A DNA stretch of 64,000 nucleotides, from contig OX337228.1 of assembly GCA_946965045.2 (NCBI GenBank), positions 5,084,001 through 5,148,000 on the forward strand, written 5' to 3'. Source of the DNA: Epithemia pelagica. Lineage: Eukaryota > Protista > Bacillariophyta. Of the stretch, positions 4,744-41,831 are shown piece after piece; position 1 is the first letter of the stretch; each line of letters begins with the position of its first letter. Made by a program: the position numbers and the translations under genes. Under the pieces are notes generated by a model, which did no database searches, was not told where the DNA came from, and worked only from the letters and a program-made list of their open reading frames with translations.

Positions 4744-5274
4744 ATGACCCGTACGATATTTGTTACCGTCGGCACTACATTGTTCGATAAACTCATTGAA
4801 AGTGTTTCATCGTTAGAAGCTCTTGGTTGGATGAATCGGAATGGGTACACAGAATTGATCGTACAGTACGGAAGGGGAAAGAAACCAGTTCTGGACGCGG
4901 TGATCCTTTCTAAGAAAAACATCACAGCTGAGGTGTATGATTTCAAGCCTAGTTTGGCAGATGATATGGCGAAATCCGACTTGGTCATTAGTCACGCCGG
5001 TGCTGGTACCGTAAGCGAAGTTCTGCAACTTAGAAAACCCCGACTTGTGGTCGTTGTGAACACTCTTCTCATGGACAACCACCAGCTGGAGCTTGCTCAT
5101 GCGATGAAGCGTCGGGGATATCTGTTTGTTGTTGATTCTCCTGAGAAACTCTCTGCCCTGACAGTGTGGGACGAATTCGAAAAATTCAGTCCGAGACCAC
5201 AAGACCCCACGGAGGGTGATAGCTTTTCGAGAATTCTGAATGGATTTCTTGGGCTTGACAGCTCCCAAACGTAA
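4744..5274 (+). CDS. ALG13: UDP-N-acetylglucosamine transferase catalytic subunit (GT28 C-terminal domain)
   Basis: 176 aa with IFVTVGTTLFDKL, LIVQYGRG, ISHAGAGT and LMDNHQLELA motifs. Confidence 0.93.
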   Translation: MTRTIFVTVGTTLFDKLIESVSSLEALGWMNRNGYTELIVQYGRGKKPVLDAVILSKKNITAEVYDFKPSLADDMAKSDLVISHAGAGTVSEVLQLRKPRLVVVVNTLLMDNHQLELAHAMKRRGYLFVVDSPEKLSALTVWDEFEKFSPRPQDPTEGDSFSRILNGFLGLDSSQT

Positions 5275-5471
5275 AATGTGAACAATCATTCAGCTATTGT
5301 ATGGGTGTAGAGGGCCTCGAAATGAGTAATGACAGTAGATCTATGATACTGAACAATGAATCCTAGAAATATCTTTAAACATGAGTGAGGACAACTACCG
5401 GTAGAGTCCCGAGATGAATTGACATTGCGGCAAAAATAATTCAGCATTTCAAATGTTGCGTAGAGATGGAA

Positions 5472-6000
5472 CTATTTGGCAGCTGCTCTTGCAGCCGCAC
5501 GCGCCTGCACTTTGGCCCACTTGTCCCTTCGTCGCTGACCCTCGGTTTTCTTTTCCACTCTAGGCGGTTCGATCATCTTTTCTAGTTTCTCCGTGATCTC
5601 GGTCATCCGAATCATGTCCTCGTCGTACTTCTCGTTGAATCGATCATATGCCTCTTTCCATTCTGGTTCCAAGTCGGCCGCTTCTTCTGGTGTAAAAAAT
5701 CGAACCTTAGTCCACTTTTCCTGAATGGCGAGAATTTGTTTTTGGTTATCAGTCATCTGATCCTCAGGTGTTGTACCTGATAAAATCAGACGGCTCTGCT
5801 TCTGGGGACGCAAAATCCCTGACGAAAATCAAGAGAGAGCATGTTAAGTATGCGTTGTTGATGGAGAAGTCACAACCACACATTGGCAAGCTTGTGCAGC
5901 AAAAGTCGTACGCATAATCAAATACACTCGATCCCAGTTACGTACCAAAAGCAGATGCCCCTGAAAGAAGCATGAGAAAAGAGAACGCAGTGCACTTCAT
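5472..6000 (-). CDS. Hypothetical plastid-targeted protein, 2 exons
   Basis: Exon 1 (6000-5947) encodes MKCTAFSFLMLLSGASAF, a signal peptide ending in ASAF. GT-AG intron 5946-5819 joins in frame to GILRPQKQ...AAARAAAK*. Confidence 0.75.
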
Positions 6001-6569
6001 CTTGTTTACGATATCTTCTTTCTTTCAATAGACTCTTCGCGGACGGCGATTGATGGTTGTGAATGTGATGGTGCGTTATTGCGTGTGTGATGTGAGTGAT
6101 GTAAGACAGACGCGAAAAAAAGTGTCAGAGTCAGAAGTCCGTCCTTCGACCGGACCCGATCATGCATATGCATTCGCCCCACGATGCACAGACTCGAATT
6201 CATCATGTCACGTACAAGTCAACAAATGCCAAATAAAACAATGTAGTCCTTCTTTTGTGTTTACTGTTTACAATTTCTCTGCTTGAAGGCGTAAGTGGGT
6301 ATCCCACTGTGGAACCCGATCTACAATACGTGGGACGTGAAAGATGATTTATGGCACGAGATATCTACTCTCTATTCTGTGATCCACTTCATCGTCCAAT
6401 CCCAGCTCACAGCCTTCCTGATATCCATTTGGATCGCACAAAATCTGTTTTGGCGCCACGGGACTCCTACACTAGTGGTATCGTCTGGAATTGCAAAAAG
6501 TAACAAAAATCAATATCGACTATCCCCATGCACAAGAAAACACCATCACTTTCTTGACTTGCACAAGAA

Positions 6570-21700: not shown

Positions 21701-24700
21701 ATGAATCCTGTTCGCTCTTTGTTGCTCTCTCGTTGTTCAACCAAGCTTCGATTTCCTCCGTCCATTTAATCTTAGTCTTCTTCATGAAAGAGTTGATTCG
21801 AACTTTCTTCGGGGGCAAACGTCCAATCCACTCGCAAAACAGCGCAAGGCACTGGCGGTGAATTCCTGATGAAGGAAGAAGGAATGTGACTTCTACGGGG
21901 TGTTCCCCTGGTGGTATCATCAAACCACTTGCAACGTTTCCATTCATCCCCGTGATACCCGAGGCACTCGCCATCGAATCATCAAGAACAAACATCTTTT
22001 TTATCCGACCAGAAACCTTTTCGAAAGAACTGTTTATGCCATGTTGTACGACTTCGGGCAGTAAGGACATCTGTTGTTCAAGGTAGGTGCCAATGAGAGC
22101 ACATCGTTTGACAACGTTTGTCAAAAATGAATCTTTGTAACTAACGCCTTGTAATTTCGGTACGAGATCCGAAAGATGATTGATTTCCCATTGGCACTCT
22201 TGAACCTGCAATGGACTGGGGGGCATGTCACTGTCAGAATGGACGAGTGTCCCTCGGAGAAGAATATCTGCCAGCAACTGCCACATCGAAACTCCATTCG
22301 TTGAAGCTTTTTGTTCCGATGATACAACGAAAGCAAGAACACCCCATATAGCGTCGACTTCACATCGAGGTAGATTTTGCCCAATACAGGAATACCTTGT
22401 TGTCGTCGGCTTCAATACCTTGACGGTTGTCATGTCATCTAGGAAGGCTGACCATACAGCCGAGTCGACGCCAGAAAGATAAACATGGTCACCATCAGAC
22501 GCGACCCTCCATTGCTGTATTTGTAGTTCCTCCAGTATACATTGACAAGTCCGTTCAATCATATTTTCGTGTAACGAAAGAGCCGAAAGAAGGGTATTCA
22601 TATCTTTCATATGCTTTGCCCAGTCGGGGATTTCTCGTAGTCCCCACGCCGAAGGAAACAACAAAGAGAGAATAGCCTCGACAAACTGGTGAACAACCAT
22701 GCCAAGAAAAAACGCAGAGGCACATGGATTAAATATATTGCTGGCGCTTTTGTCTATCAAAGACTGAGATCGCTCTTTCACCTTCAACATCAAAGACAAG
22801 GTTGCCACAAGCAACTTAACATGAACACTAAGTTCATCCGTTTGCCCTTCAGCAAGCATTTCTTGAATAGTTTTTCTCCCCTTTTCGGAACGAAGTGATC
22901 CCAAGAGCGTCCGCCAGATAAGAATTCGATTTTGCGGTTCAATATCGGAATCAGAGTTGAGAGTGTCAATCAGTCTGTCTAGGGACGTGGAACAGTCAAG
23001 TTGCGTCTGGTAACCCTCTGCGATGTTTGCACAGATCGAAGATATGTTGTCATCCGAAAGAGGTGCTGTTCTGGACGTGGTCACAGATGCATCCCTACTC
23101 AACCGATCGCGATTTCGAAGCAGCGAGAACATCGTGGCTGATCGGGTCCTTGTACTCGCTTCTTGAACCGAAGAGAACTCGTTTTGTTTACTCCCGTGAA
23201 CGCTACGGGAACTTCTAACCTGGCCAGCGTTGGGTTGATGGGAGCTGCGTGAAAAGTTCACAGTACCACCACCCTGTGGTTCCTGTTCGGAGTTGATTCT
23301 CAAAAACTGTTCCATTGCAGCAATGGCTCTCGACTCGGTGTTGTTGCTTCTTTCAGTACTTCTCCTTTTAGTTGCCCTTTGATCTCGACTCGATGACCGC
23401 TCCTGATATGTACCATTTCCTCTACCAAAAGCAAAGTGGGGCATGGAGTTATCTTGGTTTTGTTCTGAAGGTCGTGATCTTGTGAGAGAGGCTCCACTTT
23501 CCAGCGGGTGAGTACTCGAACCGAGAATCGCAATATTGTTCTGACGGACGCTTTGTCGGTTTCGAGCAAAGGTTGCTTCGTTTGAATCACTACGGCGAAT
23601 GACAACAGAACTGCGGTTGTCCTGCCTTGTTTCTTTCTCCAGTTGAGTCATACTGGAATTTCCACCGTCATCACTACTTGGTCCATCAGCCTGATGAGCG
23701 TTGTCGCGTTCGTCATGTAACTCTTGACGCCCAGCATTCGATTGTTTGTTGCCGACAACCAGGCAGTATTCTTCACTACCATATCCCCCAGATCTGCGCC
23801 TCTTGCGTTTGTCCTTTCGAGTCTGCTTGGAAGCTTTCGTGCTTGAGTTGGAATCGACAACGATCGTACATCGCTTCGGTCTCTTGAACCGGGCATGTTG
23901 ATGTCGATCAAATGCCGACAATGTTCGAGGATCATCCAAAGAGCGTCGGTTTGGTGACATGGTCCTCAGAGCATGAATGGTACTGTCACTATCATTCTCT
24001 GGTATAGAATTGTTCGAAGAAAATTCATCCTCCTCAGGATTATCGACTGATCCGTGACGTTGATGGCGCATTTCCTCCTCGTCTTGGGCCTGGTCCTCTA
24101 ACAACCGAATGTGGTGACGAAATTCGGCCAGAATACTTTCTATAGTTCTGTCAAGTTCTTGAAACCGCATCTCTCGTGCTTCTAGTTTTGTGCCGCGAAA
24201 CTGAGAGAGTTGCGGCGCAGGCATCTCTGCCTTGTGTTTTCGGTACTCGTGTCGATTAGACAGCTTCCGAAGAACATTTTGACATTGATCCCTCCCATAT
24301 CTGACCAATTCTCCCAAAAGGCGATTGTAAGAGGCCTCCGCTTTCTCTATTTGGCGTAGGCTTGTTTCCGGTTGTATGCTTGCGGTCATGTTCGCCAATT
24401 CTTGACGGGCGCTAGGAATCGTCCTGGTTTCCATATCCTGAGCCAAACGATCGAAAAAGGCTGGTAACTCTAGAAAGGATATGCTTTTTGTTTGATCCAC
24501 AATATCTCTTGGCATTTCCTCGGCATCTCCTTCGGGTTGAATAAAGTCGTTCGCCTCATCGTCATGGTTCCCTTCGTACGGATATTCTTCATAGACCAAG
24601 TCGGCCTGAGATGGATTCAGTGGACTTTGTGACTCGCCAATGTGAGAGGGAAAACGTGCGCTTTGGTTGGACTCGGACCTATTTGGCTCGGAATCTTTGG

Positions 24701-25742
24701 TATCTCGTGAGGCAAAGGAGCATACCGAAGTTGGAGTTGCATCAACTGTAGAAAACGAAATTCGAGGTGTTTTTGCGTCCTTCCCTTGTTCCGAGGTTCG
24801 TTCGACATGTGCAGAGTGGGAAAGTGCAGAGGGTTGTTGGGGTGATCCAATCCTCTCTAGGATTGATGTGACGTGACCATGACTCACTCGTTTTCTCTTG
24901 CTTTGGTCTGTCAGAGTACTCGGATTGTGAATCGAAGGGACCACGAGTTGTTTCTGTGACGTAATCAATTCCTGCAAAAAATCGGAATCGTCGTCGTCGT
25001 CTTCGCCTTCCGATGACAACGAGCCATGTGGAGAGTCCGGGGACAAATCGTGAGATACTAAAACGTTCTCCCGGCTTCTAGTATGGTGATTTTCACCAGA
25101 GTCTCCAGCTCCGGCGATGTTCTCTACATTTTCGGTAGTAAAGTTACTCTTGTGGAGATGGTCATTGTCGTATACATCATTTCCTCCAAAGAGCAGTTGC
25201 TTTGCCTTCTTTTGTAGATTTCGGACCTTTGTTCGTTTTGGTTTGAACGCCTTTATTTCATCCAACATGGCATCAATGCTGTCTTCATCTTCGTCCTTTT
25301 CCTGCTCCACTCGTGGCGCCTCCTTCTCTGTGGTTGTCGAGGGAGGTGCTTGATGATGCGACGATCGATTCGATGCTTCTTGCACAGTATTTAGTGGGGT
25401 TGACCACATATCGCAAGAACCACAATCTCGTCGCAGCGATCCACAATTGGAACATCGTCCCAGGAGCATTCTTCGATCACGAAGACTTCGCGAAGAGGAT
25501 TGATTGTGAGCATGAACATAGGCCGTATCAATATTGCGCTCCAGTCGACCGTCTAAAACGTAACGAACCGAGACCTTCACCTCATGGCTTGGTCGCGCCC
25601 CTGTTTCAGATTTGCTATCATCGAAAGGCGGTGGCCTTGAATCCACCTGGACAATGTGGCCAACACCACCCGGTTGATTGATTCCAGGCCATGCACGGCG
25701 ATCCACCTGCACCAATTCACCAACAATGAAAGGCGACGTCAT
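18750..25742 (-). CDS. Very large hypothetical protein (about 2330 aa): N-terminal Tudor-like domain, CxxC cluster, long disordered region and long helical C-terminal half
   Basis: Uninterrupted 7-kb ORF. Likely start MTSPFIVGELVQVDRRAWPGINQPGG, followed by GRCSNCGSLRRDCGSCD. Confidence 0.8.
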   Translation of the reverse strand: MTSPFIVGELVQVDRRAWPGINQPGGVGHIVQVDSRPPPFDDSKSETGARPSHEVKVSVRYVLDGRLERNIDTAYVHAHNQSSSRSLRDRRMLLGRCSNCGSLRRDCGSCDMWSTPLNTVQEASNRSSHHQAPPSTTTEKEAPRVEQEKDEDEDSIDAMLDEIKAFKPKRTKVRNLQKKAKQLLFGGNDVYDNDHLHKSNFTTENVENIAGAGDSGENHHTRSRENVLVSHDLSPDSPHGSLSSEGEDDDDDSDFLQELITSQKQLVVPSIHNPSTLTDQSKRKRVSHGHVTSILERIGSPQQPSALSHSAHVERTSEQGKDAKTPRISFSTVDATPTSVCSFASRDTKDSEPNRSESNQSARFPSHIGESQSPLNPSQADLVYEEYPYEGNHDDEANDFIQPEGDAEEMPRDIVDQTKSISFLELPAFFDRLAQDMETRTIPSARQELANMTASIQPETSLRQIEKAEASYNRLLGELVRYGRDQCQNVLRKLSNRHEYRKHKAEMPAPQLSQFRGTKLEAREMRFQELDRTIESILAEFRHHIRLLEDQAQDEEEMRHQRHGSVDNPEEDEFSSNNSIPENDSDSTIHALRTMSPNRRSLDDPRTLSAFDRHQHARFKRPKRCTIVVDSNSSTKASKQTRKDKRKRRRSGGYGSEEYCLVVGNKQSNAGRQELHDERDNAHQADGPSSDDGGNSSMTQLEKETRQDNRSSVVIRRSDSNEATFARNRQSVRQNNIAILGSSTHPLESGASLTRSRPSEQNQDNSMPHFAFGRGNGTYQERSSSRDQRATKRRSTERSNNTESRAIAAMEQFLRINSEQEPQGGGTVNFSRSSHQPNAGQVRSSRSVHGSKQNEFSSVQEASTRTRSATMFSLLRNRDRLSRDASVTTSRTAPLSDDNISSICANIAEGYQTQLDCSTSLDRLIDTLNSDSDIEPQNRILIWRTLLGSLRSEKGRKTIQEMLAEGQTDELSVHVKLLVATLSLMLKVKERSQSLIDKSASNIFNPCASAFFLGMVVHQFVEAILSLLFPSAWGLREIPDWAKHMKDMNTLLSALSLHENMIERTCQCILEELQIQQWRVASDGDHVYLSGVDSAVWSAFLDDMTTVKVLKPTTTRYSCIGQNLPRCEVDAIWGVLAFVVSSEQKASTNGVSMWQLLADILLRGTLVHSDSDMPPSPLQVQECQWEINHLSDLVPKLQGVSYKDSFLTNVVKRCALIGTYLEQQMSLLPEVVQHGINSSFEKVSGRIKKMFVLDDSMASASGITGMNGNVASGLMIPPGEHPVEVTFLLPSSGIHRQCLALFCEWIGRLPPKKVRINSFMKKTKIKWTEEIEAWLNNERATKSEQDSFQEAFSPSLGYEVSKTRTRLSEFAAFFDVLSFVCIAVRTDFALPKPQGKELAKNIWGLLSDRRMREHFHVVSSKSNEQCDCKVDTFLVQTAAKVVAFLVLCIAGINPMDPFCRLGRGQLLEHSSLESSLDFLAVALVTCLDCCSHSWEAICFVSGCLGTTVMYLKRLAHSTESEDWQVKGASLFLRCCWDKFLPVFCRCFGSTGPENHSSSMEHAISLLLSILYGLVPDSLGSTTSPPLIQNSPPKTDTGNEDGMEFGLDDSVLVQILDSCETKISQVHVVSLANLLWETFEHSKPSTRFDIGSGMSSARGVAVSRKSSLVCLSLAKLTLLCCDEAVADLILGQLNVQKIQGHKPEDKMYFEQSCFVYLSELLRRNRPLSFVHLEKHMESIALGVISMSLETGLIRKLPSLSLALNSVFDMNGRGPQCNEYFRLKAFTSGKLPALQQRYIEYREVCQGLLFRLQELKSSPGVTSLYESRCLEELDNDLTKKPVSLRPSMEGAMFDRLRLLRGVICQTSSTRNPEDFHRLSILLSQSSWELLCLCESLGNMVNVGENRLKETLRCYSVFYAAFTSWFILRATTDPITSPGFRKTLHEHYLSSLLRCSRSCPNGVLRRLATTTFTDGKLDIKSNDPTYEQVHDVLDLPLIMTGRCRQIIFCCAIEFSRGEFFRSSSSSFQALVNLCHEDNVARSVAHTLSGHREDPMDESMGSSFSRIVESYMRLIDVEKLSHGNGIKQGLDGLKRHTFEEILVRRLSRPRLRGLERLASLHLLRYMLEEDDSDNSVNDSSSTEYGLKVTCALFRSLSTTLMSILSEPKLHVEALYTALVCVRSCVCLPSRRVERNGKGWILDWCLSRSAQVDQETFDGSAYRYIMVTSRYFKRLSNLLRDRHDLNDYRRGLHHKRWEDQRLLFGWDDLDSEAKALEETIGLVSGTTSTSLQVNVYSKTAPSENVDFPEFVPSEQTERLAQMIVSEIIRGLPVER

Positions 25743-26119
25743 ATCGGGAGAAACAATCGTTGTTGCAATGGAGAAGAGCGCTGCTTCAAGTGATCCAAGC
25801 CATTTTCTATTTTCTTGGGACTCGAACAACGATTGCGCTTTGATGTGGAGGGTGGAGGTGCACCAGTCGAAATGGGACCAATGATGGTGCTCGTGCGCGG
25901 GCGCCTGGTCGCCATGCGCGTTAAATAGACGCCAGCCGACACATGATTCATCTCCGAACACAAATCGCAAACCACAAACCCTGTTCCCTACGCCGAAAGC
26001 AACAACCACCCTCATGTACTGTAATATCTATTGTACTTTCCATGCCGAGAGCATCACATATTCTCATGTACCTTGAAAGGTTCATGCCTCCGTCTTACTG
26101 CGCTTTTCCCGCTTCTTCC

Positions 26120-31574: not shown

Positions 31575-31595
31575 CAATACTTCTCCTTTAGGGTA

Positions 31596-31629
31596 CAAGC
31601 TGAGTTCAGACAGAATGTTCCTGACGTAG
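31596..31629 (+). repeat. Left terminal inverted repeat (34 bp)
   Basis: caagctgagttcagacagaatgttcctgacgtag, preceded by TA. Confidence 0.93.
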
Positions 31630-32223
31630 CGCTCCAGTAGGAAATCTACGTAATCCGCGCGAGCCATCCCCTTAATATAGCCCTTCTATTTATGCCTCTA
31701 CCGTTCTACCAAAAATTGACCATGGTGAACGGTCCTTTTGACCGATCTCTTGCCAAATAGGAGACGGCTCCATGATCCCATGCTCTGAACCTCTTCTCCA
31801 TTCATGGGTTGAGCATGGAGAACGATGTCGGCGCTGCATTCGTTTTGTAGGTGTCGTTTTATCTAGTTGAAGGTGGTCGCCGCGCGATTTACTACGGCGA
31901 CTCACGGCAAAACTTGGTGCAACCAATGCACCTCTATTGTAGAATCGAATGATAGAAGATAGAACAAAGACTATGAACACTTGTAGCGTTGTTCACGTCA
32001 AAAATTGATATTCTTCTCGTTAGATATATGGAACTTAGACTAGAAGTTGCGTCGTTCACAACAAAGATTGATGTTCTTTTCTTTGTTGTGACTCACACAG
32101 CCGTACCTGAACGCAATGTATTGTACGGTAAACGTAACACAACTATAGAATTAGATCGTATTCATAGAGAATGAAGATCCTACTCAAATGATAATCATAA
32201 AACGCTGCTACATTGTTCACTAT

Positions 32224-32796
32224 CTAGGCTTGTTGATGATTAAAGAAGAGATTTTGAAGCGGGTGCTTGAGCATCATCGCACCAAGCGAAATGTTGAAGC
32301 GATCCATATCCTTGCTGCCCATGTAGATTGTAACGACCTGGGGTTCCATGCAGGCTTTAGGGTTGATGGAGCAGCGTGTGTAGAGGCGGATGCGTCCCAT
32401 GGGAGGTCCGTTCTTGCTCGTCTTTCCAGAGACCTGGTCCAGGTGCGACAGAGCAATGAACCCAACTGGAACAACCAACGCTGGTTCCTCATGCTCGCTT
32501 GTTGCATCCCGGTCAAAGACTGCAATCCGTAGGTAGTCGGTCGCAAGCTCCCGCTGCACAAGCAGATGGCCACGGTCGACGATGTTGTGGCCAGTGTCCT
32601 TGTTTCTCGACATGGGCCCGATGAGCGCGCAAACATCGCTGGCATAAAAGCACGACTTGAACGGGAGACCAGCACCACCCTCACGGCCATCCTCTTCGTT
32701 GAACTCGAACTTCGTCCTCATGTTGGTCATCTTGTTTCTTCTTCCTTGCCTCTTCCTGTCGTCTCTGTTTGATTGTTCCATTGCACGGCGGGTCAT
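32224..32796 (-). CDS. Transposon cargo ORF A, hypothetical (190 aa)
   Basis: ATG-started ORF divergent from cargo ORF B. Basic N-terminus followed by a globular-looking region. No family recognised. Confidence 0.5.
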   Translation of the reverse strand: MTRRAMEQSNRDDRKRQGRRNKMTNMRTKFEFNEEDGREGGAGLPFKSCFYASDVCALIGPMSRNKDTGHNIVDRGHLLVQRELATDYLRIAVFDRDATSEHEEPALVVPVGFIALSHLDQVSGKTSKNGPPMGRIRLYTRCSINPKACMEPQVVTIYMGSKDMDRFNISLGAMMLKHPLQNLFFNHQQA

Positions 32797-32967
32797 TCGG
32801 AAGTTGCTTCATGCTGCAAGTTGATTTTGTGGCGCGCGCCGATATTGTTCACGAATGAGCGCGGGGGGATTCCCTAGATGACACAAGAACGGAGAGCGGG
32901 CAACAATCAAACAAACAAACACAACAATCAAACGAACGAATCCCTATTGTGTTCTCACTTTCCAACG

Positions 32968-33874
32968 ATGCGCCAGACGCGTAGTGCTACCAAACGAGCT
33001 GAGTCTGCGAAGAAGGAGCAGGAGGACTCCGCCGCAGCTCCCTCCACAACCGCATTTCCCTCCGACAAGGGAAACAAGGGAAACAAGGCAAACAAGAAAA
33101 TGAAGACAAAGACGGCCGTGGACAACAAAACGTCGAAGAAGAAGAAGACGACGACGACGAAGTGTCCCGCTTCGACAAAGAAGCATGTGACCTTCAACCT
33201 TGAGGGTCCTTCGTCGTGGCACGAGCGCGCAAAACAGTGGCAACTCACCATTGGGGATGAAGATGGTATCCCAGTGTTCTTCGTCAGCAACAAGGACGTC
33301 GAATGCGCTAACCTGTCGGATATCGCGGCAGAGCTCCTTGCGATCGAGGCTGTCGGCAAAGAAGGTAAGTTTGATTGTTCATTGTTGGTTTTGAGTCTCC
33401 CTTTCTCACGACGCGCCCTCTGCTGCCACAGACACCAAACCCAACAGCAAGCCCGACAACAAGCCCGACAGCAAGCCCGAGAAGGAGATCAAGAAGGAGG
33501 ACGACGTCGAGAACAAGACTCCAGAGTCTTATGTGACCCCGAAGAAAGTAACTTCTTCCCCGAAGGTGGCGTCTCGAGCTTTCGCACTGACCCCCTCCCA
33601 GAAGCATGCTTTCCAGCGTCGGATTGCTGAGGAACAGGTGAAGGAAAGTGGAGCGACAGACCCTCGCCAGACTTTGAATGAGTCGCTGGCATTGGGAGAA
33701 AACATCCCGTCGTCTCCTCCTTTGTTCTTTAGCAATCCTTCCCGTGCATACCGGACATCCATTGATTCGTATGCCGATGATGGATTTCTCGAGACCCAAG
33801 AAGACTTCATCGGTACGCAGCAAAACGGGCTTTTTGGTCCCGATTACTTGGATCATGAGGACGAGGCGTACTAG
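32968..33874 (+). CDS. Transposon cargo ORF B, hypothetical with Lys-rich N-terminus and acidic C-terminus, 2 exons
   Basis: MRQTRSATKR...AVGKE, then a GTAAGT...CAG intron at 33365-33431 joins in frame to DTKPNSKPDNKPDSKPE...DYLDHEDEAY*. Confidence 0.65.
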
Positions 33875-33924
33875 ATATCTACTGATGGACGTTTTAGGTA
33901 TCCTTAATCACTAAATATGAATCG

Positions 33925-34145
33925 ATTTGTCATCATGGTACTTGTAGTGCTTCTACAGTCGTTCTTGTTGTGATTATCATTATTGTCGTCGTCCAAGTCC
34001 TCGTCATTGTCGTGGCTATCATTGTCGTCGTTGTATTGTAGTCGTCCTTGTTGTAGCTATCATCGCTCATCCCGTTTGTCCTCTTCATCATCGTTATGGT
34101 CGTGATTGTCATGGTCATCATCATCGTCATCGTCGTCATCCAGCT
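33925..34145 (-). repeat. Degenerate GAY/AAY trinucleotide low-complexity tract (Asp/Asn-rich coding remnant)
   Basis: The minus strand reads [20 protein letters not shown]..., interrupted by stops and a frame change. Confidence 0.5.
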
Positions 34146-34400
34146 TCCCAGTGTCGGCAGTTGGGTCCCGGTTTGCGGGCGCGTCTCGTATGGATGTACG
34201 AGGGAGTTCGTGATTGGTCCCAGACGAGCTATGATTCTTATCTCATATTTTGCGTTTTCGACACTTCATGGAAACAAACACGACAATGTACTAAAGTATA
34301 ATATGAAGGAATAAACTAATAAATCTTAATGTCATACTGCAACTCAACGTACCATGGTATTCTTTTTCAACAATAACACACTTTCACCACGAGGAAAGAT

Positions 34401-37250
34401 CTAAGTTTGATCGGCTTCTTTGCTCGCGATCTTCTTACCAGGTTTATAATTCGCGGCCACAAGCACCTTACGAGGATTGTCACTTAGGACGCAAACACGC
34501 TTGTCCCCGACCCAAAGCTTAACCCCAACGAGCCCACTTCGGCGAACACCAGGGATGTCTTTGTCATGGAAGTAGTAGTCGGAAAGCCTGCTTTCTCCAG
34601 AAGGAAGGTTGTAGGTGTTCTTTGGCATGGGATCGTGAACGGTCCCATCTTTTCCTTGGTACACGTAGAAATGTGCACGTGGATTCCCCATCTCCCCAGT
34701 CTTAAAGCCACCAGCATGGACAGTATCTCCTCGAACGAGGAGAAACGTGCCATATGGGATATGTACCACTTTACCCAGCTCGTTCATATAATCCTTGTGC
34801 TTCTCACCGCGGAAACTCCACAATTCAACGGACATACCCTCCTCCGCCAGGGGCATGAAAACAATAAAAGGCATGCGTTCCCGGAGTGGCAGATCTGCAT
34901 TCGCTCTCCGAGTCTTTTTGATTGGTTGCTTCCCGGAGGGCGTTTTGGGACCTTCGGACATGTTCCCTGTTACGCTCTGGAACAAGAAGTCGATGTGAGG
35001 TTCTTGAACTTTTGCCTCTGTGGTCTTCATGAACGAAAGGTGAATGTTGATTTGGTCCGCAAATGAATCATCTTTTGCGTAGTTCATCCCATAGAGAGCT
35101 GAGGCAAGCAGCTGCTTGAAATTGGCCGTGACCTTTGCAGCATGTTCGGGGTTAACGTGGCCGAAGTACCGAATGTTGGACACCATTCCCTCATGTTCCA
35201 TCATTGCCATCAACAAATTTGGTGTGTAGTCTTGAACAGATTTGAAAAATTTGCCCTTTCCTTTCTGGTCCAAGCCTGTGCTGTGCCACGCATTCTCCAA
35301 CATTTCGAGGAGATCTGGCGGAGTTGTCAAAAAATATCCTCGATACATTTTGTTTTCAATATCGTACAGCCATTTGAAATACTTCGAGCGCAATTCTCTA
35401 TGTAACAACTTCATTTTCTCGAAACGCTCATTCTCCTTCGCTTTCGCATCGATCGCTTCCATCTCCTCAAAAATACTATCCGTGTCATCTTCTGCCATTA
35501 CCACTGGTACGAACATTCCAGTACTAGGGCTGGGATTGGCTTGAGTGGCGGGTTGAGCTTGTGCTGCAGGTAGGACGGGACTGCTGGGAAGGAGCACGGG
35601 TTGAGCTTGTGCTGCAGGTGGGATGGGATTGCTCGGAAGGAGGTGGGGTGAGCCTTCGACCGGCTGGGTCGTGCGTTGTTGTTGCTGCTGATGATGGAGC
35701 GATGAAGGTAGAGTCCCCCCGTAACCTCCATAGTTGGGTTGATTGTAGGACGGAGGATGTCCATGGTACTGCGGCGGAGGATGACTCGTCGGAGGATGAG
35801 GATAATGCGGCGGAGGATAAGGATAATGCGGCGGAGGATGATGATTGTACTGCGGCGGAGGGTAATTGTACTGCGGCGGAGGATAATTGTACTGCGGCGG
35901 AGGATGGTGATAATATTGCGGAGGATAATGCGGCGGCAGCTGAGGGGGCGAATTGTAGTGCTCAGAAACGTATTGCGGAGGAGGCGGAGAAGGAGGACGA
36001 GCAACAGTAGCAACTGGACGGAAAACAGTAGAAGGAGAAGTTAAGACAGGCTTCTTTGTTTTTTTCCCGTCGTCTTCATTTTCATCACTGGGTCGACCGC
36101 GTTTCTTTCCCTCGTCTTCGTCGTCGTCACCTTTCGTCGACGGTCGGATAACCTGTTCGGAGGACGTCGGCGATTCGTCCGTAAGGTTATAAAACAAAGA
36201 CAGCTCGTCGCCCGGCTCAATATTTTTGATTGCCTTAACTAGAAGATTCGGCATGATTCTCACGTTGTAACCGTCGTCCGATTCATCCGGTGGATTGTCT
36301 GTACCGTACAGATGGTGTTGGTGGTCGTTGATTAAGTGCAGCCCCATGCCGAAGTGATCGTCGTTGTCTGCTTGAAGCCTTCGATTGTCACGTCCGAACT
36401 GAATCGCGTACTCGTTGGGTACAACTGTCCGAGACGTGACGTCGTTTCCCGTGTACGCACCAATCACTTCACCATCTTTGATTGTCCGAACTGCAAAAAC
36501 GCCAAACCCGGCGCCTGGGAGTTTTGACTCCTTCACCTCAAACAGAAGCATTTTTCCAAGGTAGATCTTGACTACCGGATTGTTCGCAAATGTGTAACCG
36601 ACATGCTTGCCGATCGGGAAGGTATGTTTTCTGTTCTTCTTGACAGGGAGACCCATTCCACTCGAAAGTGGCACAATCTTCCCCTTTAGCAAGCCAGAAC
36701 CGGGCTTCCGAATTGGAGCTTCTTGGACCGAAAAAGTGGCCGAAATCTTCCGTGAGACATACTCTCCCATAGCACAGGCAAGTACAGCACTGTCTTTGAT
36801 CTTGGAGAGCGTCTTGAGGCCTTCGGTGAAAGTCCTGATTGGATCCCGTCCAGAACGAGAAGGGAGTTTCTCCACTTCCTCGATGCCTTTCTTGTAGTCC
36901 TCTGTGCGCGTATCGATGAGGAGCTGCCGCATTTGAGTTTCCGAATACTGTTTGCTGTGGTCCTTCTCTGGATGGCCACGCCGAACATCTGCAAGCTTTT
37001 TATCCTTCACTTCGGCAAAGTCTTGATCCGAAAGAAACCGATGGTGCTTTGTTGTTGTCGCTTCGTCTGTTGCTGCTGCTTCGGGTGCTGCGGCTGCTGC
37101 TGCTTCGGGCGCCGCTGCTGCTTTGGCTGACTGCTCTTCCGCTGCATCTATTGCAAGTATAAGAGCGTCAAGATTTCCTTTGTCACTCATGCTGTCTCGT
37201 TTTTGAGCGCCTGCTTTTGAATACTGTTTCTTAGGGCTTGGTTTCCCCAT
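34401..37250 (-). CDS. Transposon cargo: SET domain plus Pro/Tyr-rich linker plus 2OG-Fe(II) dioxygenase-like domain (949 aa)
   Basis: SET part: VKESKLPGAGFGVFAVRTIKDGEVIGAYTG...HLINDH...VKAIKNIEPGDELSLFYN. Dioxygenase part: QEPHIDF (HxD)...PFIVFMPL...VHIPYGTFLLVRGDTVHAGG (distal His)...NPRAHFY (candidate 2OG-binding Arg). Confidence 0.88.
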   Translation of the reverse strand: MGKPSPKKQYSKAGAQKRDSMSDKGNLDALILAIDAAEEQSAKAAAAPEAAAAAAPEAAATDEATTTKHHRFLSDQDFAEVKDKKLADVRRGHPEKDHSKQYSETQMRQLLIDTRTEDYKKGIEEVEKLPSRSGRDPIRTFTEGLKTLSKIKDSAVLACAMGEYVSRKISATFSVQEAPIRKPGSGLLKGKIVPLSSGMGLPVKKNRKHTFPIGKHVGYTFANNPVVKIYLGKMLLFEVKESKLPGAGFGVFAVRTIKDGEVIGAYTGNDVTSRTVVPNEYAIQFGRDNRRLQADNDDHFGMGLHLINDHQHHLYGTDNPPDESDDGYNVRIMPNLLVKAIKNIEPGDELSLFYNLTDESPTSSEQVIRPSTKGDDDEDEGKKRGRPSDENEDDGKKTKKPVLTSPSTVFRPVATVARPPSPPPPQYVSEHYNSPPQLPPHYPPQYYHHPPPQYNYPPPQYNYPPPQYNHHPPPHYPYPPPHYPHPPTSHPPPQYHGHPPSYNQPNYGGYGGTLPSSLHHQQQQQRTTQPVEGSPHLLPSNPIPPAAQAQPVLLPSSPVLPAAQAQPATQANPSPSTGMFVPVVMAEDDTDSIFEEMEAIDAKAKENERFEKMKLLHRELRSKYFKWLYDIENKMYRGYFLTTPPDLLEMLENAWHSTGLDQKGKGKFFKSVQDYTPNLLMAMMEHEGMVSNIRYFGHVNPEHAAKVTANFKQLLASALYGMNYAKDDSFADQINIHLSFMKTTEAKVQEPHIDFLFQSVTGNMSEGPKTPSGKQPIKKTRRANADLPLRERMPFIVFMPLAEEGMSVELWSFRGEKHKDYMNELGKVVHIPYGTFLLVRGDTVHAGGFKTGEMGNPRAHFYVYQGKDGTVHDPMPKNTYNLPSGESRLSDYYFHDKDIPGVRRSGLVGVKLWVGDKRVCVLSDNPRKVLVAANYKPGKKIASKEADQT
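35745..35960 (-). repeat. Tandem 18-21-bp repeats encoding PPPQYNY/PPPHYPH units
   Basis: The plus strand has repeated tactgcggcggagg/aatgcggcggagg units, in frame within the SET-dioxygenase ORF. Confidence 0.85.
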
Positions 37251-37662
37251 GGTCGAAACGCAAAAACTCGAAACACGAAACACAAGAAACACGAAACGCA
37301 GCATTCTCCTCAGCCCTCAGCCCACATTCCAAAAAAAAAATCTTGAGCTCACATACTAAAAAACGGTGAAGTTTTGGTATGTGGGCTGAGTTACTTAAGG
37401 ATTTGCGTGCCAGTTTTGCGATGCGTGCGCGTTTTCGGAGAGGGAGGCGTGTTTCGCGCGAGGTCTGCTCCGAAAATCGTCCATTTTCTCGCTCTCTCAC
37501 ATTTTCGAGGTACTTACAAACTGATAATCCAACACGCAACACGAGCACGCAACACGGAAGTGATCATTGATACCAATAACTGACAAGAAATACATTCAAT
37601 AAAATGGATTGCTGTTATAAATAGTTAAGTTACATGCATTTTGATGATAAATGGAGATTAGA

Positions 37663-40600
37663 TCAGGTTTCTACTGCACCAGATCCTTGCGTTTCTCTCC
37701 AGAGACGTGAGATGAAGCCATGATCTTGGTCGAAGGCGGATCGGTGACACTTGATTGCTTTTGACATCTTTTCAATTTCGGCATACGAGAGGCCCGCAGC
37801 TGCATAGTCGCTGTTGTTGGAATTTTGATCGTATAACAAGTACGCGAGCATATAGCGACGTGCCTTTGCTGACATTTTCCGCATGATTTCGGGTGTTGTT
37901 TTCTTCAGGCTCGCTGTCAAACATCGTAAAAAGGCAGCTTTGTCTTTCTTCTCATTCAGTGAGAAAGCACGAAAGACTTTTTTTGAGTAACCCCAGCCAT
38001 ACTCGATCCCCTCACCGGCCATTTCACAGTGATACTTGGTCGATACGAGAATCTCGATCCTGCAACGATGTCGTTCAGACAAGTCTTCCGCCAGCTTCTC
38101 CATTGCAGATTTTTCGTTCTTGAAATCGGAGCATTCGCTCATCAGATGAACCATAGAGTACTTTTTGTAGTCCGCCTGATAGGCTTCTTTCACAGTCTTC
38201 TTATCCGCTTCCAACCATGCATCTCTGGTTGTCTTGACGTACTTGATCATGTTGTTAGGGTCTATCCACCCCCGCTCCCATAACACTTGAAAGAGCCCTT
38301 TTGCATTATTCATCCAGCCTTCCTCGATCACATCATCTTCAATCACCGTTGCAATGTTGGAGCGTTTACAAAGGTCCTGTAGTTCACCAGCATTTTTCGA
38401 TTGAAATGAACGTTGCATTCCAGGTCCCATGACCCGGACAAGTTTTGCCATGAGCTCCTTCTTTGTGAGGTTGCGCTTTTTCTTTCTACCAGTTCGGTGT
38501 GTATTCTTCGATGCGACACGCTGCGCGTCATTGAGACGATGGCCTTTTTTAGCAACTGGACCACGATCGTTCTCCTGATAGACGAGGTGTTGTACGTCAC
38601 CAACTCGTAGTTTGTCGTCATGGTTGTACGGGCCAAGGCAAGCTTGATCAATAATTTGTGTGTCCCGCATGCTGGGAACAGCTCCTCCCCAGTCGTTATT
38701 CATGTTCAGAGCATTTAACCCATCGGATTGTTGTTTTCCATGACCACTGCTTTGGTCGAACAAAAAGACAAAGTCATGGGCGGGGAACATGACCACGAGG
38801 CAATCGACAATATCCTCCAACTGCAAGGCCATGTATTCATAATTCCAATATCCCTCTTTATCTGCTCCGTATTCAAAAAAGCGAGTGAACGGTTGGGCAT
38901 TGGTAATTGGAGTCTTGGCAGTGTGACCATTGAGGTTCACTGCAGCCTCGGTAGAGACGTATTTGTTGTGTGTCGCATGTAGACGGAGTTCATTAATCCG
39001 AAATAGACTCGCAGCAAGCAACGGGTTTCCGTTCATAAGGAAGCCCCATGATCGGCTTACAAAAGCGCTGATCATCATCCCATGTCCATCATCCTTTGGC
39101 AGCATTTTAGTTGCGCCATCTTTAGTGTACCATGCCTTAGACGAGAAGGAAAACTGCTTGTAGATCGATTCGTCCTGGCCGATGAGGATGACAGGTTTGC
39201 GGTCGGAGGGAAACCTGTGTGACAAGTTTCCATTGTGAATTGTGTTTTCTGGTTTGATGTACCGTTCAAATTCGCTTGGGAAGGCATCAACATGGTACTC
39301 CCGCATCTGCTTGCCTGTTGTTACATCAGTGTACTCAAATACAAAGCTGTTTGGCAAGAGCTTCTCCTTGCCCGCATTCCCTTCGTTTTCAAGTTTGATT
39401 GCATCCTCGGTAGGGAGCTGCACCCACCGATACGACAGCTCTTCCCACTTAAAGTACTTCTTGACAAAAGCAGCTCTGTGGGCAACATTCTCAGCATTTT
39501 CGTGTCGATCAGTGAAGTATGTTTTCGTGTGTTCCTTGAACACGAGCCCTGCAGCAGCAATACATCGCCACGCTGTGCTTTGCGAAATGGTGGAAAGCTT
39601 CATCGATGCCAAGAAGGCCTCGTACGATACTGGCGTTGCATTCGTATCCATGCACTCTTGTACGATCATGGTATGCATATCCGGAAGCAATGTTGTCCTC
39701 AGGTACATTAGAGCAGACTCTGTTGTAAGAGTGCTCAGGTTTTCCTTTGCCCAGCATTCAAACTTTACCTTTGCTTCAGGTATGTGAACGAATAAGACGG
39801 GCGATGGCTCTTTCCCAATATGAACGTGGTAGTTGGGATGAGGGAAACTGTCGTTTTCCCGAAAGTACCTGTGAAAACGAGCAATGGTCTTGGGATGTTT
39901 TTTTACTTTTTCACCATAAATCTGTTCCATTTTGCTTATGGCTTCGCTTATGCAGTTCAGCCATGTACGACCGTGTGGCATATCAAGCAACGCTATCTTA
40001 TAAGAAAGTTGTAAATACGTTGCCTTGAGCAGTACCCTCTGTTGCTGTTCCTGGTTGGGGGGGAAGATGTCTCCCTTGTTAACCACATTCGGAAGTGCCT
40101 CCACGTTGGAAATGGCCCTTTCAAGGGTTTCTATCCATCGCTCAAGATTTCGTTTTGACGATCCTGGAGAATCGCATTTGCCGGCAAAGAGCCTACGGTT
40201 CCTTGGCTCATCAAAACAGGCGCTTTCCATTTGTTGCGATAGACCTTGGATCATCTCACTCTCGAAAACTGAAAAACCAATCGGCAAACTCTGTGGATGG
40301 TCATGGCCGATTTCGTCTGTGGCCAATTCAGGATGTTGGATTGCTCCAACAAGCACCTGATTTGTGTTGTCGTGAGGTGGTGACGTTTGCATTTCGGTAG
40401 GGCTGTCTCCAATTTGTGGCGGTTGACCATGTTGCTGCGTTGCAGTGCTCTTCATTGCTGGTGGTGTTGTAGTGTTTCTTGCTTGCTTGGATACAGTTGC
40501 CGTGCCTTCATGTACCCCTGGTGAGTCTTCGTTCCTTCGCTTCGTTGGCTTCTCTCGTCCCGACCGCCGAATCACATTCTCGGCTGCAGCCTCCAGCCAT

Positions 40601-40929
40601 TCTTGGTGATCGTTCAACATCACTGGCAGTTTTGTTGTGTCGGAGCTTATATACAAGAATGTGTATCTTTGTTTATTGATTGTGATTTTGTGGCGGTACC
40701 AGCCAAACTTGTTTGGTTCCGACACCTCATTTTCGAAAATGGGTTTAAGGACAATGTCTCTAGAGAAAAGAGAATTCAATCTGATTGTCGACAGTCCTGG
40801 CAACCAAGTTCTCAGGTATCCTACAATCTCGGTGTCTTGGATCCACTTGTTGCAGAATCCAAACGAGGATCGGGTGCATCGCGTCTTAAAGACGTCAAGA
40901 ATATCTTTCCCAGAAAAATTTCGTTCCAT
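37663..40929 (-). CDS. DDE transposase, IS630-Tc1-mariner-like, long-insertion type (1088 aa, uninterrupted)
   Basis: ISQSTAWRCI...GLVFK (HTH end); YFTDRHE; ILIGQDES (D1); GHGMMISAFV; EGYW; FLFDQSSGH (D2); KGLFQVLWERG; STKYHCEMAGEGIEYGWGYSK (E motif, equivalent to PxxSPDLNPIExxW). Confidence 0.93.
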   Translation of the reverse strand: MERNFSGKDILDVFKTRCTRSSFGFCNKWIQDTEIVGYLRTWLPGLSTIRLNSLFSRDIVLKPIFENEVSEPNKFGWYRHKITINKQRYTFLYISSDTTKLPVMLNDHQEWLEAAAENVIRRSGREKPTKRRNEDSPGVHEGTATVSKQARNTTTPPAMKSTATQQHGQPPQIGDSPTEMQTSPPHDNTNQVLVGAIQHPELATDEIGHDHPQSLPIGFSVFESEMIQGLSQQMESACFDEPRNRRLFAGKCDSPGSSKRNLERWIETLERAISNVEALPNVVNKGDIFPPNQEQQQRVLLKATYLQLSYKIALLDMPHGRTWLNCISEAISKMEQIYGEKVKKHPKTIARFHRYFRENDSFPHPNYHVHIGKEPSPVLFVHIPEAKVKFECWAKENLSTLTTESALMYLRTTLLPDMHTMIVQECMDTNATPVSYEAFLASMKLSTISQSTAWRCIAAAGLVFKEHTKTYFTDRHENAENVAHRAAFVKKYFKWEELSYRWVQLPTEDAIKLENEGNAGKEKLLPNSFVFEYTDVTTGKQMREYHVDAFPSEFERYIKPENTIHNGNLSHRFPSDRKPVILIGQDESIYKQFSFSSKAWYTKDGATKMLPKDDGHGMMISAFVSRSWGFLMNGNPLLAASLFRINELRLHATHNKYVSTEAAVNLNGHTAKTPITNAQPFTRFFEYGADKEGYWNYEYMALQLEDIVDCLVVMFPAHDFVFLFDQSSGHGKQQSDGLNALNMNNDWGGAVPSMRDTQIIDQACLGPYNHDDKLRVGDVQHLVYQENDRGPVAKKGHRLNDAQRVASKNTHRTGRKKKRNLTKKELMAKLVRVMGPGMQRSFQSKNAGELQDLCKRSNIATVIEDDVIEEGWMNNAKGLFQVLWERGWIDPNNMIKYVKTTRDAWLEADKKTVKEAYQADYKKYSMVHLMSECSDFKNEKSAMEKLAEDLSERHRCRIEILVSTKYHCEMAGEGIEYGWGYSKKVFRAFSLNEKKDKAAFLRCLTASLKKTTPEIMRKMSAKARRYMLAYLLYDQNSNNSDYAAAGLSYAEIEKMSKAIKCHRSAFDQDHGFISRLWRETQGSGAVET

Positions 40930-41285
40930 CCTGTTGTAGACCGTGTTGCGTGGGATGAGTTGGATGATCGAATTATTGAGGATGATGCCAACCGTTTGAG
41001 ATGTTGCCCCATTTGGGGTGGTTCAAGTAAACCCTAAAGCATCCGGATGCAGCTCGGCAACATCTCGAACGGTTGGGATGGCCCTCCACCATGGTCGTTA
41101 GACAACAACCGTTTTTTCATCATTTTCGACGGAATTCTAGCGTTCGGAAGCTGTCACACATCACGGTACGAAACAAAAAATTTATTATTCAGACACTGGG
41201 TTGTCACGAGTCGGACACTTTCATTCACTAGTCAGGCCAAACGCTATTGAGGATTATATTTTATGGTACTAAATCTACGAGGGGT

Positions 41286-41319
41286 CTACGTCAGGAACAT
41301 ACTCCCTGAACTCAGCTTG
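41286..41319 (-). repeat. Right terminal inverted repeat (34 bp)
   Basis: ctacgtcaggaacatactccctgaactcagcttg, followed by TA. Confidence 0.93.
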
Positions 41320-41831
41320 TACAGGTATAGGTAGCCCGACGCCCGACCCACAATAAATGCGACCAGATTACGATGGATAAGGATAAGGATAAGGTAATCC
41401 TCGAATTATCGTACCGCTAAAATGACGTTATTGGTAAGAAACGGACGGTGGGTATTTGGCATTGTGTGTATGCAATGTCTATGTGCATCGTGTATCGTGC
41501 ATATGGGGCGTACGAGGTACGAGTACACGAGTAGTCGTAGTTCCTCTATGCATTTTTCTTTCTTTTTCTGCCGGGTTTCGATTTTGGATCGGATAAAATC
41601 CATTGATGTTAGCCTTTTGGAAAGAAAAAGGAAAAAATGAGTTCAGAAAAGAAGTCGTGGTAGAATGAATCACGAACGGACACACCCCTTGCCCTTCGCT
41701 TTCTATCGTTCAGAGTGTACGCGAGGAACAAGGTGTCCGGAACATCTGTTTTCGCGGCCACGTTCCATCCAACAAAGGACACAAATCAAACGAAAACAGA
41801 ATTTCACGACATCTATACTATCGCTATCGCA

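Follow-up and report, generated by a model that had tools for sequence, protein, structure and literature searches.

A SET domain and an Fe(II)/2OG oxygenase joined in one cargo gene of a Tc1/mariner-like transposon of the diatom Epithemia pelagica

The transposon and its genes

The window, a stretch of 64,000 nt from contig OX337228.1 of Epithemia pelagica, harbours a whole cut-and-paste transposon of 9,728 bp (positions 31594 to 41321, minus strand, the TA at each end included), whose limits were derived from a comparison of copies. Five further copies with exactly the same span, 99.95-100% identical, are found at other loci of the assembly and have unrelated flanks. TA is present at both boundaries in all six copies, and the flanks show no other duplication. 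The TIR arm on the side of ORF250 (31593 to 31640) comprises 48 nt and is 83% complementary to the arm on the transposase side (41275 to 41322), the latter being assigned from the TIR match and the flanks.

Upstream of the SET-oxygenase fusion gene, on the same strand, lies a gene for a putative transposase of 1088 aa (37663 to 40929, minus strand), whose cluster at 90% identity has 43 members. By its language-model features in the Atlas it is placed near DDE_3 (IS630/Tc1-mariner) clusters, with a score of 0.90 and 181 shared features; profile searches of the whole protein and of three pieces against Pfam, NCBIfam and PDB sequences gave no match. The opposite strand carries a Lys-rich ORF of 250 aa (ORF250; 32878 to 33630, plus strand), which is conserved in all copies and still 98.8% identical in a diverged copy of the element, L012. 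Assignment to the piggyBac class was rejected, as TTAA flanks none of the six insertions and TA is found instead. We conclude that the element is a multi-copy Tc1/mariner-like DNA transposon, recently active and, given six near-identical insertions, young. The 48-nt TIRs, TA flanks, six copies and putative transposase bear out the first-pass annotation, which had taken the fusion gene to be transposon-borne. Little is known of active DNA transposons or of chromatin enzymes in the host's algal group, and the element, if active, might serve as a genetic tool for diatoms.

The fusion gene is a single ORF of 967 aa without internal stop (34401 to 37304, minus strand), open over all 967 codons in each of the six young copies. 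A second ATG (M19) at 37250, also used as start by gene callers, would give a protein of 949 aa; it is here that the first-pass annotation had let the gene begin. That annotation had seen SET and dioxygenase motifs in one ORF, separated by a Pro/Tyr/Gln linker, and both observations hold. The encoded protein consists of a basic N-terminus, the SET domain, an AT-hook-like motif, the linker and a complete oxygenase domain, in this order. In the SET half, the motifs are GAGFG (residues 264-268), GAYTG (282-286), IND (325-327) and ELSLFY (367-372), and in the oxygenase half HID (770-772), VHAGG (862-866) and NPRAH (874-878). The AT-hook-like KKRGRP (residues 400-405; 36090 to 36107, minus strand) was assigned by inspection of the translation, and its K400, K401, R402, R404 and P405 do not vary among 12 paralogues. 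The low-complexity linker of 165 residues (436-600; 35505 to 35999, minus strand), recognized by composition and motif count, contains 32% P, 12% Q and 10% Y as well as ten PPxY motifs, and its length differs from copy to copy.

The two domains of the fusion protein

The SET domain (residues 266-373; 36186 to 36509, minus strand) was identified by Pfam, by its translation, by the Atlas and by weak PDB matches. Its match to PF00856 is beyond chance (E 8e-6): it scores 26.7 bits, where the cut-off lies at 22.4, and covers profile positions 1-105 of 105. SET/PR families account for 96 of the 100 nearest Atlas clusters (top score 0.97). The weak PDB sequence matches to this region are exclusively to SET domains of PRDM, MLL, EZH2 and SETD7 proteins, the best ones being the PR domains of MECOM, PRDM16 and PRDM12. 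Designed Kelch proteins among the matches of the SET profile were discarded, their scores being sums over repeats with no single significant stretch. GAGFG, GAYTG and ELSLFY are invariant among the paralogues, and in an alignment with MLL1 Y372 stands opposite the final Tyr of ELTYDY. Around the IND of residues 325-327, as already noted from the sequence in the first pass, N-D-H stands where N-H-S/C is expected, and the domain has no post-SET region. Two word-index searches for SET homologues returned nothing beyond the protein's own cluster, and a pattern scan of metagenomes returned none. The AlphaFold model of this domain, computed from an alignment of only three sequences, has a pLDDT of 34 and a pTM of 0.31.

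The Fe(II)/2OG oxygenase domain extends from about residue 632 to 922 (34539 to 35411, minus strand), as delimited by relatives, an alignment of 36 sequences (A1), AlphaFold, Foldseek and VIA. A search of 1.84 billion representatives yielded 241 relatives at E<=1e-3. H770, D772, H863, R876 and H878 are invariant throughout A1 (mean column identity 19%). A second set, A2, comprises 45 sequences; in it H770, D772 and H863 are again invariant, and R876 is at least 90% conserved. With 241 relatives and an invariant HxD...H...RxH pattern, the domain is beyond chance. We propose that H770-I-D772 (34989 to 34997, minus strand), on the grounds of its invariance in A1 and A2 and of the model, is the iron-binding HxD, and that the stretch VHAGG...NP-R876 (34677 to 34721, minus strand) provides the distal His863 and the 2OG-binding Arg. 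The latter assignment is based on invariance and on an alignment of the family profile with FtmOx1, in which the VHAGG...R stretch is placed on residues 181-218.

The AlphaFold model of the oxygenase domain has a pLDDT of 82 and a pTM of 0.81. H770 is located on a short strand with D772 just behind it, H863 lies on another short strand, and R876 opens the strand that follows. Foldseek gave 404 PDB matches at E<1e-3, every listed one an Fe/2OG oxygenase, and nearly every named match from the two AFDB libraries is a 2OG oxygenase. With VIA, Z scores of 12.6-11.3 over about 195 residues were obtained for AndA, OkaE, AsqJ, FtmOx1, PrhA and KanJ, at an identity of just 8-15%. The best structural neighbours are small-molecule PhyH-type oxygenases, together with prolyl hydroxylases. 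Pfam had no match to the C-terminal 365 aa even at E 10, PhyH (PF05721) included, and the JmjC (PF02373), TET/JBP and AlkB profiles matched nowhere in the fusion protein. JmjC structures are absent from the top 50 Foldseek and VIA matches and from the top 30 AFDB matches, and neither TET/JBP nor AlkB is among the structural matches listed by Foldseek, VIA or AFDB. Thymine-7-hydroxylase occurs among the Foldseek matches, but not among the best VIA matches. An R3H domain suggested by a weak profile match to PDB 1whr (E 0.027) was rejected: the stretch falls within a segment superposed on the N-terminal portion of PhyH-type structures, and neither the R nor the H of the motif is conserved.

On the strength of the predicted structure, the C-terminal domain is a genuine DSBH Fe(II)/2OG oxygenase with a PhyH-like fold, belonging to an undescribed algal family. 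The likeness to PhyH is that of the modelled structure and of Atlas features (score 0.93), not of a profile match. Both the DSBH-type HxD...H...R set recognized in the first pass and the fold that structure prediction was expected to reveal were recovered, and Foldseek and VIA agree with the earlier impression of an enzyme closer to PhyH-like proteins than to JmjC. As features of its own, the family has a conserved N-terminal extension and a Lys/Arg-rich insert past the HxD strand. The fusion protein could offer an approach to the function of this sizeable, unannotated Fe/2OG family of marine protists, which counts 241 relatives and has no Pfam model.

Occurrence, origin and selection

None of the best 150 of the 241 oxygenase relatives matched residues 1-600, and a Pfam SET domain is lacking in all 45 long relatives. 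The neighbourhoods of the oxygenase at 19 loci from other samples contain no SET domain, transposase or ORF250, and no relatives were found in viral contigs. The search for this architecture elsewhere, proposed on first inspection for stramenopile proteomes, gave no second SET-oxygenase fusion beyond the E. pelagica genome among the relatives and loci examined. Three runs contain the gene; they are contig sets with contigs of 0.4-0.5 Mb and most likely genomic. Short pieces mapping to the element in these runs were rejected as transcripts and reflect a collapsed repeat. None of the runs listed for the gene mentions "RNA-Seq" in the description of its library.

Three of the relatives (P0035, P0043 and P0047) sit among ordinary genes with no transposase nearby, and two others (P0033 and P0034) are MMETSP transcripts. 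The SET-linked oxygenases, those of the window, of L012 and of a decayed relic, L013, form one clade (support 100/99) nested within the family. Judged from the sequences, the oxygenase goes back to ordinary cellular genes that form a family in marine protists. In L013, which is 42-50% identical, the SET and oxygenase parts follow each other in the same order and frame as in the window gene; the existence of such an old, decayed SET-oxygenase relic shows that the two parts were joined before the present element arose. The module was also retained through exchange between subfamilies.

The young copies are identical and hence uninformative on selection. Compared with the diverged copy L012, the oxygenase core has a dN/dS of 0.41 (dS 0.35) and the N-terminus plus SET one of 0.59; against L013, the ratio is 0.18 for SET and 0.30 for the oxygenase. 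These values come from two comparisons, one with a broken copy as partner and the other with saturated dS. As far as these comparisons go, both domains evolved under purifying selection. The motif residues are kept in 12 of 12 paralogues. Among intact paralogues the SET domain varies more than the oxygenase, with 7-8 differences per 126 residues as compared to 0-2 per 318.

Proposed function and relation to known systems

Hints of a nuclear role come from the KKRGRP motif, from a Med26/TFIIS N-terminal domain on one oxygenase relative, and from C2H2 and PHD finger proteins among the structural neighbours in AFDB. Probably, the fusion protein provides the element with a putative means to tamper with host chromatin. 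As a whole, the best explanation in our view, to which we assign a probability of about 45%, is a chromatin-directed two-enzyme cargo protein that is kept because it alters chromatin around the copies of the element. According to this proposal, the protein would be nuclear and directed to chromatin, and both domains would be active enzymes, each with a substrate of its own. For the PR/SET-like domain this would be a lysine of a histone or of another nuclear protein, methylated with S-adenosylmethionine as donor; the oxygenase, using Fe(II), 2-oxoglutarate and O2, would act on a protein residue or a DNA base by hydroxylation or oxidative demethylation. The gene would be kept because chromatin at the copies of the element, or in their vicinity, is changed in state, the benefit being anti-silencing or a state that favours transcription or transposition. 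The proposal is modelled on published SET, TET/JBP and 2OG cargo genes, for which such action has been suggested. The fact that small-molecule oxygenases and prolyl hydroxylases come nearest among solved structures counts against a role on chromatin or DNA. A more far-reaching version, which we regard as improbable, would see here a new class of nuclear Fe/2OG oxygenase of stramenopile-type algae working on chromatin, its targets being histone residues, methylated or unmodified, or else modified DNA bases; coupled by the transposon to an active SET domain and the AT-hook, it would allow marks to be both written and removed or oxidised at the copies of the element. If this two-mark reading were true, it would be the first case of a transposon encoding a self-contained anti-silencing device with two enzymes.

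The SET domain might instead be a degenerate, PR-like binder of a histone tail or another lysine-bearing protein that delivers the oxygenase as the only enzyme. N-D-H in place of NHS, the I-N-D likewise read in L013, the missing post-SET region, the PR domains as best PDB matches and the far greater variability than in the oxygenase would fit such a role. Active SET enzymes without the His or the post-SET region exist, however, PRDM9, SET7/9 and viral SET proteins being examples. Furthermore, the GxG, YxG, Asn and the tyrosine of ELxxxY are present and invariant in the paralogues, and a dN/dS of 0.18 against L013 speaks for constraint on this domain. We consider a purely binding SET domain unlikely. 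It is less probable still that the cargo is a neutral passenger without benefit to the element, or that it represents two genes whose halves are expressed separately via an internal start or splicing. An intron or internal start could be hidden in the 165-residue linker, and the identical young copies say nothing about selection; yet the frame of 967 codons is open in six copies, order and frame are shared with L013, dN/dS is below 1 in each half, and the module survived exchange between subfamilies.

What the oxygenase acts on raises the question if it could erase what the SET domain writes. The first-pass annotation had spoken of a possible writer and eraser in one polypeptide, the oxygenase being then a lysine demethylase for the same or a neighbouring histone mark. 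A SET-JmjC fusion reported from Phaeodactylum tricornutum (PMC3145265) indicates that such pairings occur in diatoms, and the oxygenase retains its catalytic residues, but nothing ties lysine demethylation to this domain: the JmjC profile is unmatched even at E 10, PhyH-type and prolyl hydroxylase rather than JmjC structures lead the matches, and no other listed member of the family has a SET domain. We know of no PhyH-type lysine demethylase, and we hold an eraser of this kind to be very unlikely. A DNA base such as 5mC or 6mA as the substrate, with the AT-hook and the SET domain as chromatin tethers, appears quite unlikely as well; the oxygenase would then be functionally analogous to the TET/JBP cargo of fungal transposons. 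Transposons repeatedly carry TET/JBP genes as cargo (PMC12730594), and PAG3 of the Plavaka elements joins a DNA-binding domain to a 2OG oxygenase (bioRxiv 10.1101/2025.02.11.637652); the AT-hook-like motif and thymine-7-hydroxylase in the Foldseek list point in the same direction. Against this, the TET/JBP and AlkB profiles are unmatched, thymine-7-hydroxylase falls outside the best VIA matches, and the cellular members of the family have no DNA-modification context around them.

Few transposons are equipped with enzymes for altering epigenetic marks, and those that are reveal how mobile DNA counters silencing by its host. Already published are a diatom SET-JmjC fusion and transposons whose SET and 2OG cargo belongs to separate genes; new here is that two enzyme domains otherwise carried apart are joined in one transposon gene. 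As SET cargo, the HarbingerS and MuDR families of Phytophthora, as well as Helitron captures, are cited in PMC12730594 and bioRxiv 10.1101/2025.02.11.637652. Going by what these citations describe, and thus by description rather than by sequence, HarbingerS and MuDR share with the present element a SET domain beside a transposase inside a stramenopile cut-and-paste element, whereas the TA flanks, the putative DDE_3-like transposase and the fusion of SET to an oxygenase set the latter apart. In red-algal Plavaka elements, PAG2 combines an N6-adenine methylase with SET, and PAG3 a ParB-like domain with a 2OG oxygenase (bioRxiv 10.1101/2025.02.11.637652). Here too, SET and a 2OG oxygenase reside on one transposon, and for both a modifying action on the chromatin or DNA of the element itself is proposed; however, in these EnSpm/Plavaka elements of red algae they belong to separate genes with other partners, as opposed to a single polypeptide on a TA-flanked element of a diatom. 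Fungal DNA transposons carry TET/JBP dioxygenases, for which an anti-silencing role was proposed (PMC12730594). These are likewise Fe/2OG oxygenases with an HxD...H triad as transposon cargo, but the present domain matches no TET/JBP profile and is closest in fold to PhyH-type enzymes.

Two cellular fusions are comparable in architecture. For the P. tricornutum SET+JmjC protein (bd1647), PCR is said to confirm the transcript (data not shown there); the other is the JmjC-SET protein of Neurospora crassa, and the same paper already considered that opposing activities might be linked (PMC3145265). The P. tricornutum protein also unites SET and a 2OG-type oxygenase in one diatom polypeptide; both differ from the window gene in being cellular and in having JmjC, instead of being transposon cargo with a non-JmjC oxygenase. 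With AndA, AsqJ, OkaE, FtmOx1, PrhA and KanJ the oxygenase shares the DSBH core and, in the case of FtmOx1, also the distal His...Arg; unlike these enzymes, which act on small molecules, it has no PF05721 match and possesses an extension and an insert of its own. SETMAR is a domesticated host gene in which SET is fused to a mariner-type transposase. The association of SET with a mariner-type transposase, a putative one in this case, recurs in the present element; here, by contrast, the element is mobile, and SET belongs to a cargo gene distinct from that of the transposase and is joined to an oxygenase. SETMAR is also listed for a brown alga (PMC3145265).

A single reading frame joining SET and oxygenase domains

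A SET domain and a PhyH-like Fe(II)/2OG oxygenase are joined in one gene carried by a transposon. The gene occupies positions 34401..37304 on the minus strand and forms an uninterrupted open reading frame (ORF) of 967 codons, all in one frame as the first-pass annotation had read it. The end given there (37250) is the second ATG (M19), the start used by gene callers in sister copies, from which a 949-aa protein results. All motifs quoted in that annotation were verified: GAGFG (residues 264-268), GAYTG (282-286), I-N-D (325-327) and ELSLFY (367-372) of the SET domain, and HID (770-772), VHAGG (862-866) and NPRAH (874-878) of the oxygenase.

Residues 266-373 match the full Pfam SET profile (PF00856) with 26.7 bits (curated cut-off 22.4). 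By language-model features the domain resembles small SET proteins (0.97), and SET or SET+PR families make up 96 of the 100 nearest clusters. Solved structures match only weakly in sequence; spurious repeat matches aside, nearly all of these matches are SET/PR domains (MECOM, PRDM16, PRDM12, MLL1, EZH2, SETD7 and PRDM2). On sequence grounds, therefore, the region counts as a SET domain, putatively catalytic. Y372 is aligned to the last Tyr of MLL1 ELTYDY, the position of the NHS motif reads N-D-H, and a Cys-rich post-SET region is absent after the domain. The AlphaFold model of the SET domain, built from a 3-sequence alignment, has a pLDDT of 34.

The Pro/Tyr/Gln linker described earlier spans 165 residues between the domains (32% Pro, 12% Gln, 10% Tyr; positions 35505-35999, minus strand); composition and motif count define it as a low-complexity segment with ten PPxY motifs, the classical ligands of WW domains. 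The variants are PPQY, PPHY and PPSY, set in a degenerate PPPQYNY repeat. Also located between the domains is a stretch rich in acidic and basic residues; its KKRGRP (residues 400-405) resembles an AT-hook, an assignment made by inspection only.

Family and fold of the oxygenase domain

No Pfam model matched the last 365 residues, even at E 10. A search of 1.84 billion cluster representatives yielded 241 relatives at E<=1e-3; for 63 of these, E is 1e-10 or lower. A 36-member alignment, with a mean column identity of 19%, has invariant Q165, H168, D170, P210, P216, W227, H261, G263, R274 and H276 (C-terminal numbering); the key residues are Q767, H770, D772, H863, R876 and H878 of the full protein. 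In another set, made up of 45 longer members, the same Q, H, D and H do not vary and the Arg is kept at 90% or more.

The AlphaFold model built on the 36-member alignment is confident (pLDDT 82, pTM 0.81). In this prediction H770 and H863 lie on short strands, D772 just past H770, and R876 opens the strand next after that of H863. Foldseek gave 404 matches in the PDB at E<1e-3, and all matches listed are Fe/2OG oxygenases. Structural realignment yielded Z scores of 12.6-11.3 over ~195 residues to the PhyH-type enzymes AndA, OkaE, AsqJ, FtmOx1, PrhA and KanJ, with prolyl hydroxylases next; Swiss-Prot models gave the same picture. In the family profile, RGDxVHAGG...R aligns with FtmOx1 181-218, which includes the distal iron-binding His205 of that enzyme. 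JmjC, TET/JBP and AlkB entries were not among the structural matches listed, nor were profiles of these groups matched by the domain. The structural searches agree, and therefore the earlier call of a double-stranded beta-helix nearer to PhyH than to JmjC is right.

The two top AFDB matches of the model are A0A7S2IH65 and K0S6F9, one unnamed and the other called only "Fe2OG dioxygenase domain protein". Among the next structural neighbours are several proteins whose sole annotation is "C2H2-type zinc-finger", which suggests that unannotated 2OG oxygenase-zinc finger fusions may exist in another lineage.

The carrier transposon

The gene lies within a 9,728-bp element (31594-41321) with terminal inverted repeats of 48 nt, present at five further loci of the same assembly with 99.95-100% identity, exactly the same span and unrelated flanking DNA. 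Both ends carry TA, with no other flank duplication. These ends and copies are what duplication of a TA target site and very recent transposition would leave. The gene had been rightly described as transposon-borne. Assignment to piggyBac was rejected, since piggyBac duplicates TTAA. The sequence runs that contain the gene look genomic because contigs reach 0.5 Mb, and RNA-Seq was not among the run types listed.

Upstream of the fusion gene and on the same (minus) strand, a 1088-aa ORF (37663-40929) has no Pfam, NCBIfam or PDB sequence match, whole or in pieces; language-model features alone set it close to transposases of the DDE_3 (IS630/Tc1-mariner) type. The protein appears to be an ITm-type transposase of great divergence and unusual size, common to diatom-labelled clusters. 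In 90% clusters, this putative transposase is represented by 43 sequences and the fusion protein by 14 distinct sequences (19 gene calls). A conserved 250-aa ORF (32878-33630) is encoded on the plus strand, opposite to the fusion gene. Upstream of it, ORFs of 48, 98 and 68 aa were placed by gene callers on the plus strand of every copy (within 31594-34400); together they may make up the exons of a single additional accessory gene. Pfam gave no match for any of them.

Outside the element, the genes of the window are of ordinary eukaryotic kinds and encode a DDB1/CPSF1-type protein, a PurK-PurE fusion and a LOG-like protein. A 2421-aa ORF (18750-26015, minus strand) matched no Pfam model at E<=0.001.

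Known transposon cargo includes SET genes in Phytophthora HarbingerS and MuDR elements and TET/JBP genes in fungal DNA transposons (PMC12730594). In red-algal Plavaka elements a SET-containing gene stands beside a 2OG-oxygenase gene, and the same preprint cites Helitron captures of both kinds of gene (bioRxiv 10.1101/2025.02.11.637652). The Plavaka genes are separate, whereas here both domains form one polypeptide. A SET+JmjC fusion is reported for Phaeodactylum, and the writer/eraser idea was already raised for it (PMC3145265), but that gene is cellular, while ours is transposon-borne and its oxygenase PhyH-like rather than JmjC. What sets the present gene apart is the combination: one polypeptide unites SET with a PhyH-like oxygenase that is not JmjC and belongs to an unannotated protist family, and its carrier is a young element flanked by TA.

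Distribution, function and history

The 150 best relatives of the oxygenase all lack a match to residues 1-600 of the fusion protein, a Pfam SET domain was found in none of 45 long relatives, and none of 19 oxygenase loci from other samples had SET, the transposase or the 250-aa ORF; viral contigs yielded no relatives. Within these limited samples, the fusion was thus not found elsewhere.

The architecture is firm; our best reading, whose mechanism we infer, is that the protein would act as a chromatin-directed accessory enzyme benefiting the element. Weak hints of a nuclear role come from the AT-hook-like motif, from the Med26/TFIIS N-terminal domain of one relative, and from C2H2 or PHD fingers in some AFDB structural neighbours. 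From the first-pass interpretation, the transposon-borne gene, the SET domain and the PhyH-like oxygenase stand; "writer and eraser" is unsupported.

A diverged copy of the element (L012:3817-13539) is 91.8% identical overall and a mosaic: mostly 97-100%, it falls to 72-93% (mostly 76-84%) over element positions 1-900, at the end on the transposase side, and over 5100-6900, which cover linker and oxygenase. This patchiness suggests that two subfamilies exchanged modules through recombination or gene conversion. In this copy the fusion ORF is split into 698 + 270 aa. Just downstream lies a 1370-aa RVT_2 (Copia-type) retrotransposon ORF (L012:15920-20032).

An old relic in the same genome (L013, 9200-10690) keeps part of SET (50% identical) and a still open 240-aa oxygenase ORF (42% identical) in the order and frame of the fusion gene, about 370 nt apart with a much shorter spacer containing stops. 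Neither a transposase nor a matching TIR was found nearby; the relic may represent an older element that has decayed, or what is left of the cellular gene behind the captured cargo. Maximum-likelihood analysis groups the three oxygenases linked to SET (window, L012, L013) in one clade (100/99), nested within the family among members with the look of ordinary cellular genes. Of such members, P0035 has neighbouring genes that are conserved in four metagenome samples, the P0043 and P0047 loci have no transposase nearby, and P0033 and P0034 are MMETSP transcripts.

Between the window copy and L012, dN/dS is 0.41 for the oxygenase core (dS 0.35) and 0.59 for the N-terminus plus SET; against L013, where dS is saturated, it is 0.18 for SET and 0.30 for the oxygenase. 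In intact paralogues the oxygenase hardly varies (0-2 differences per 318 residues), and SET shows up to 8 differences per 126 residues, with motif residues untouched. Total length of the paralogues varies from 948 to 970 aa.
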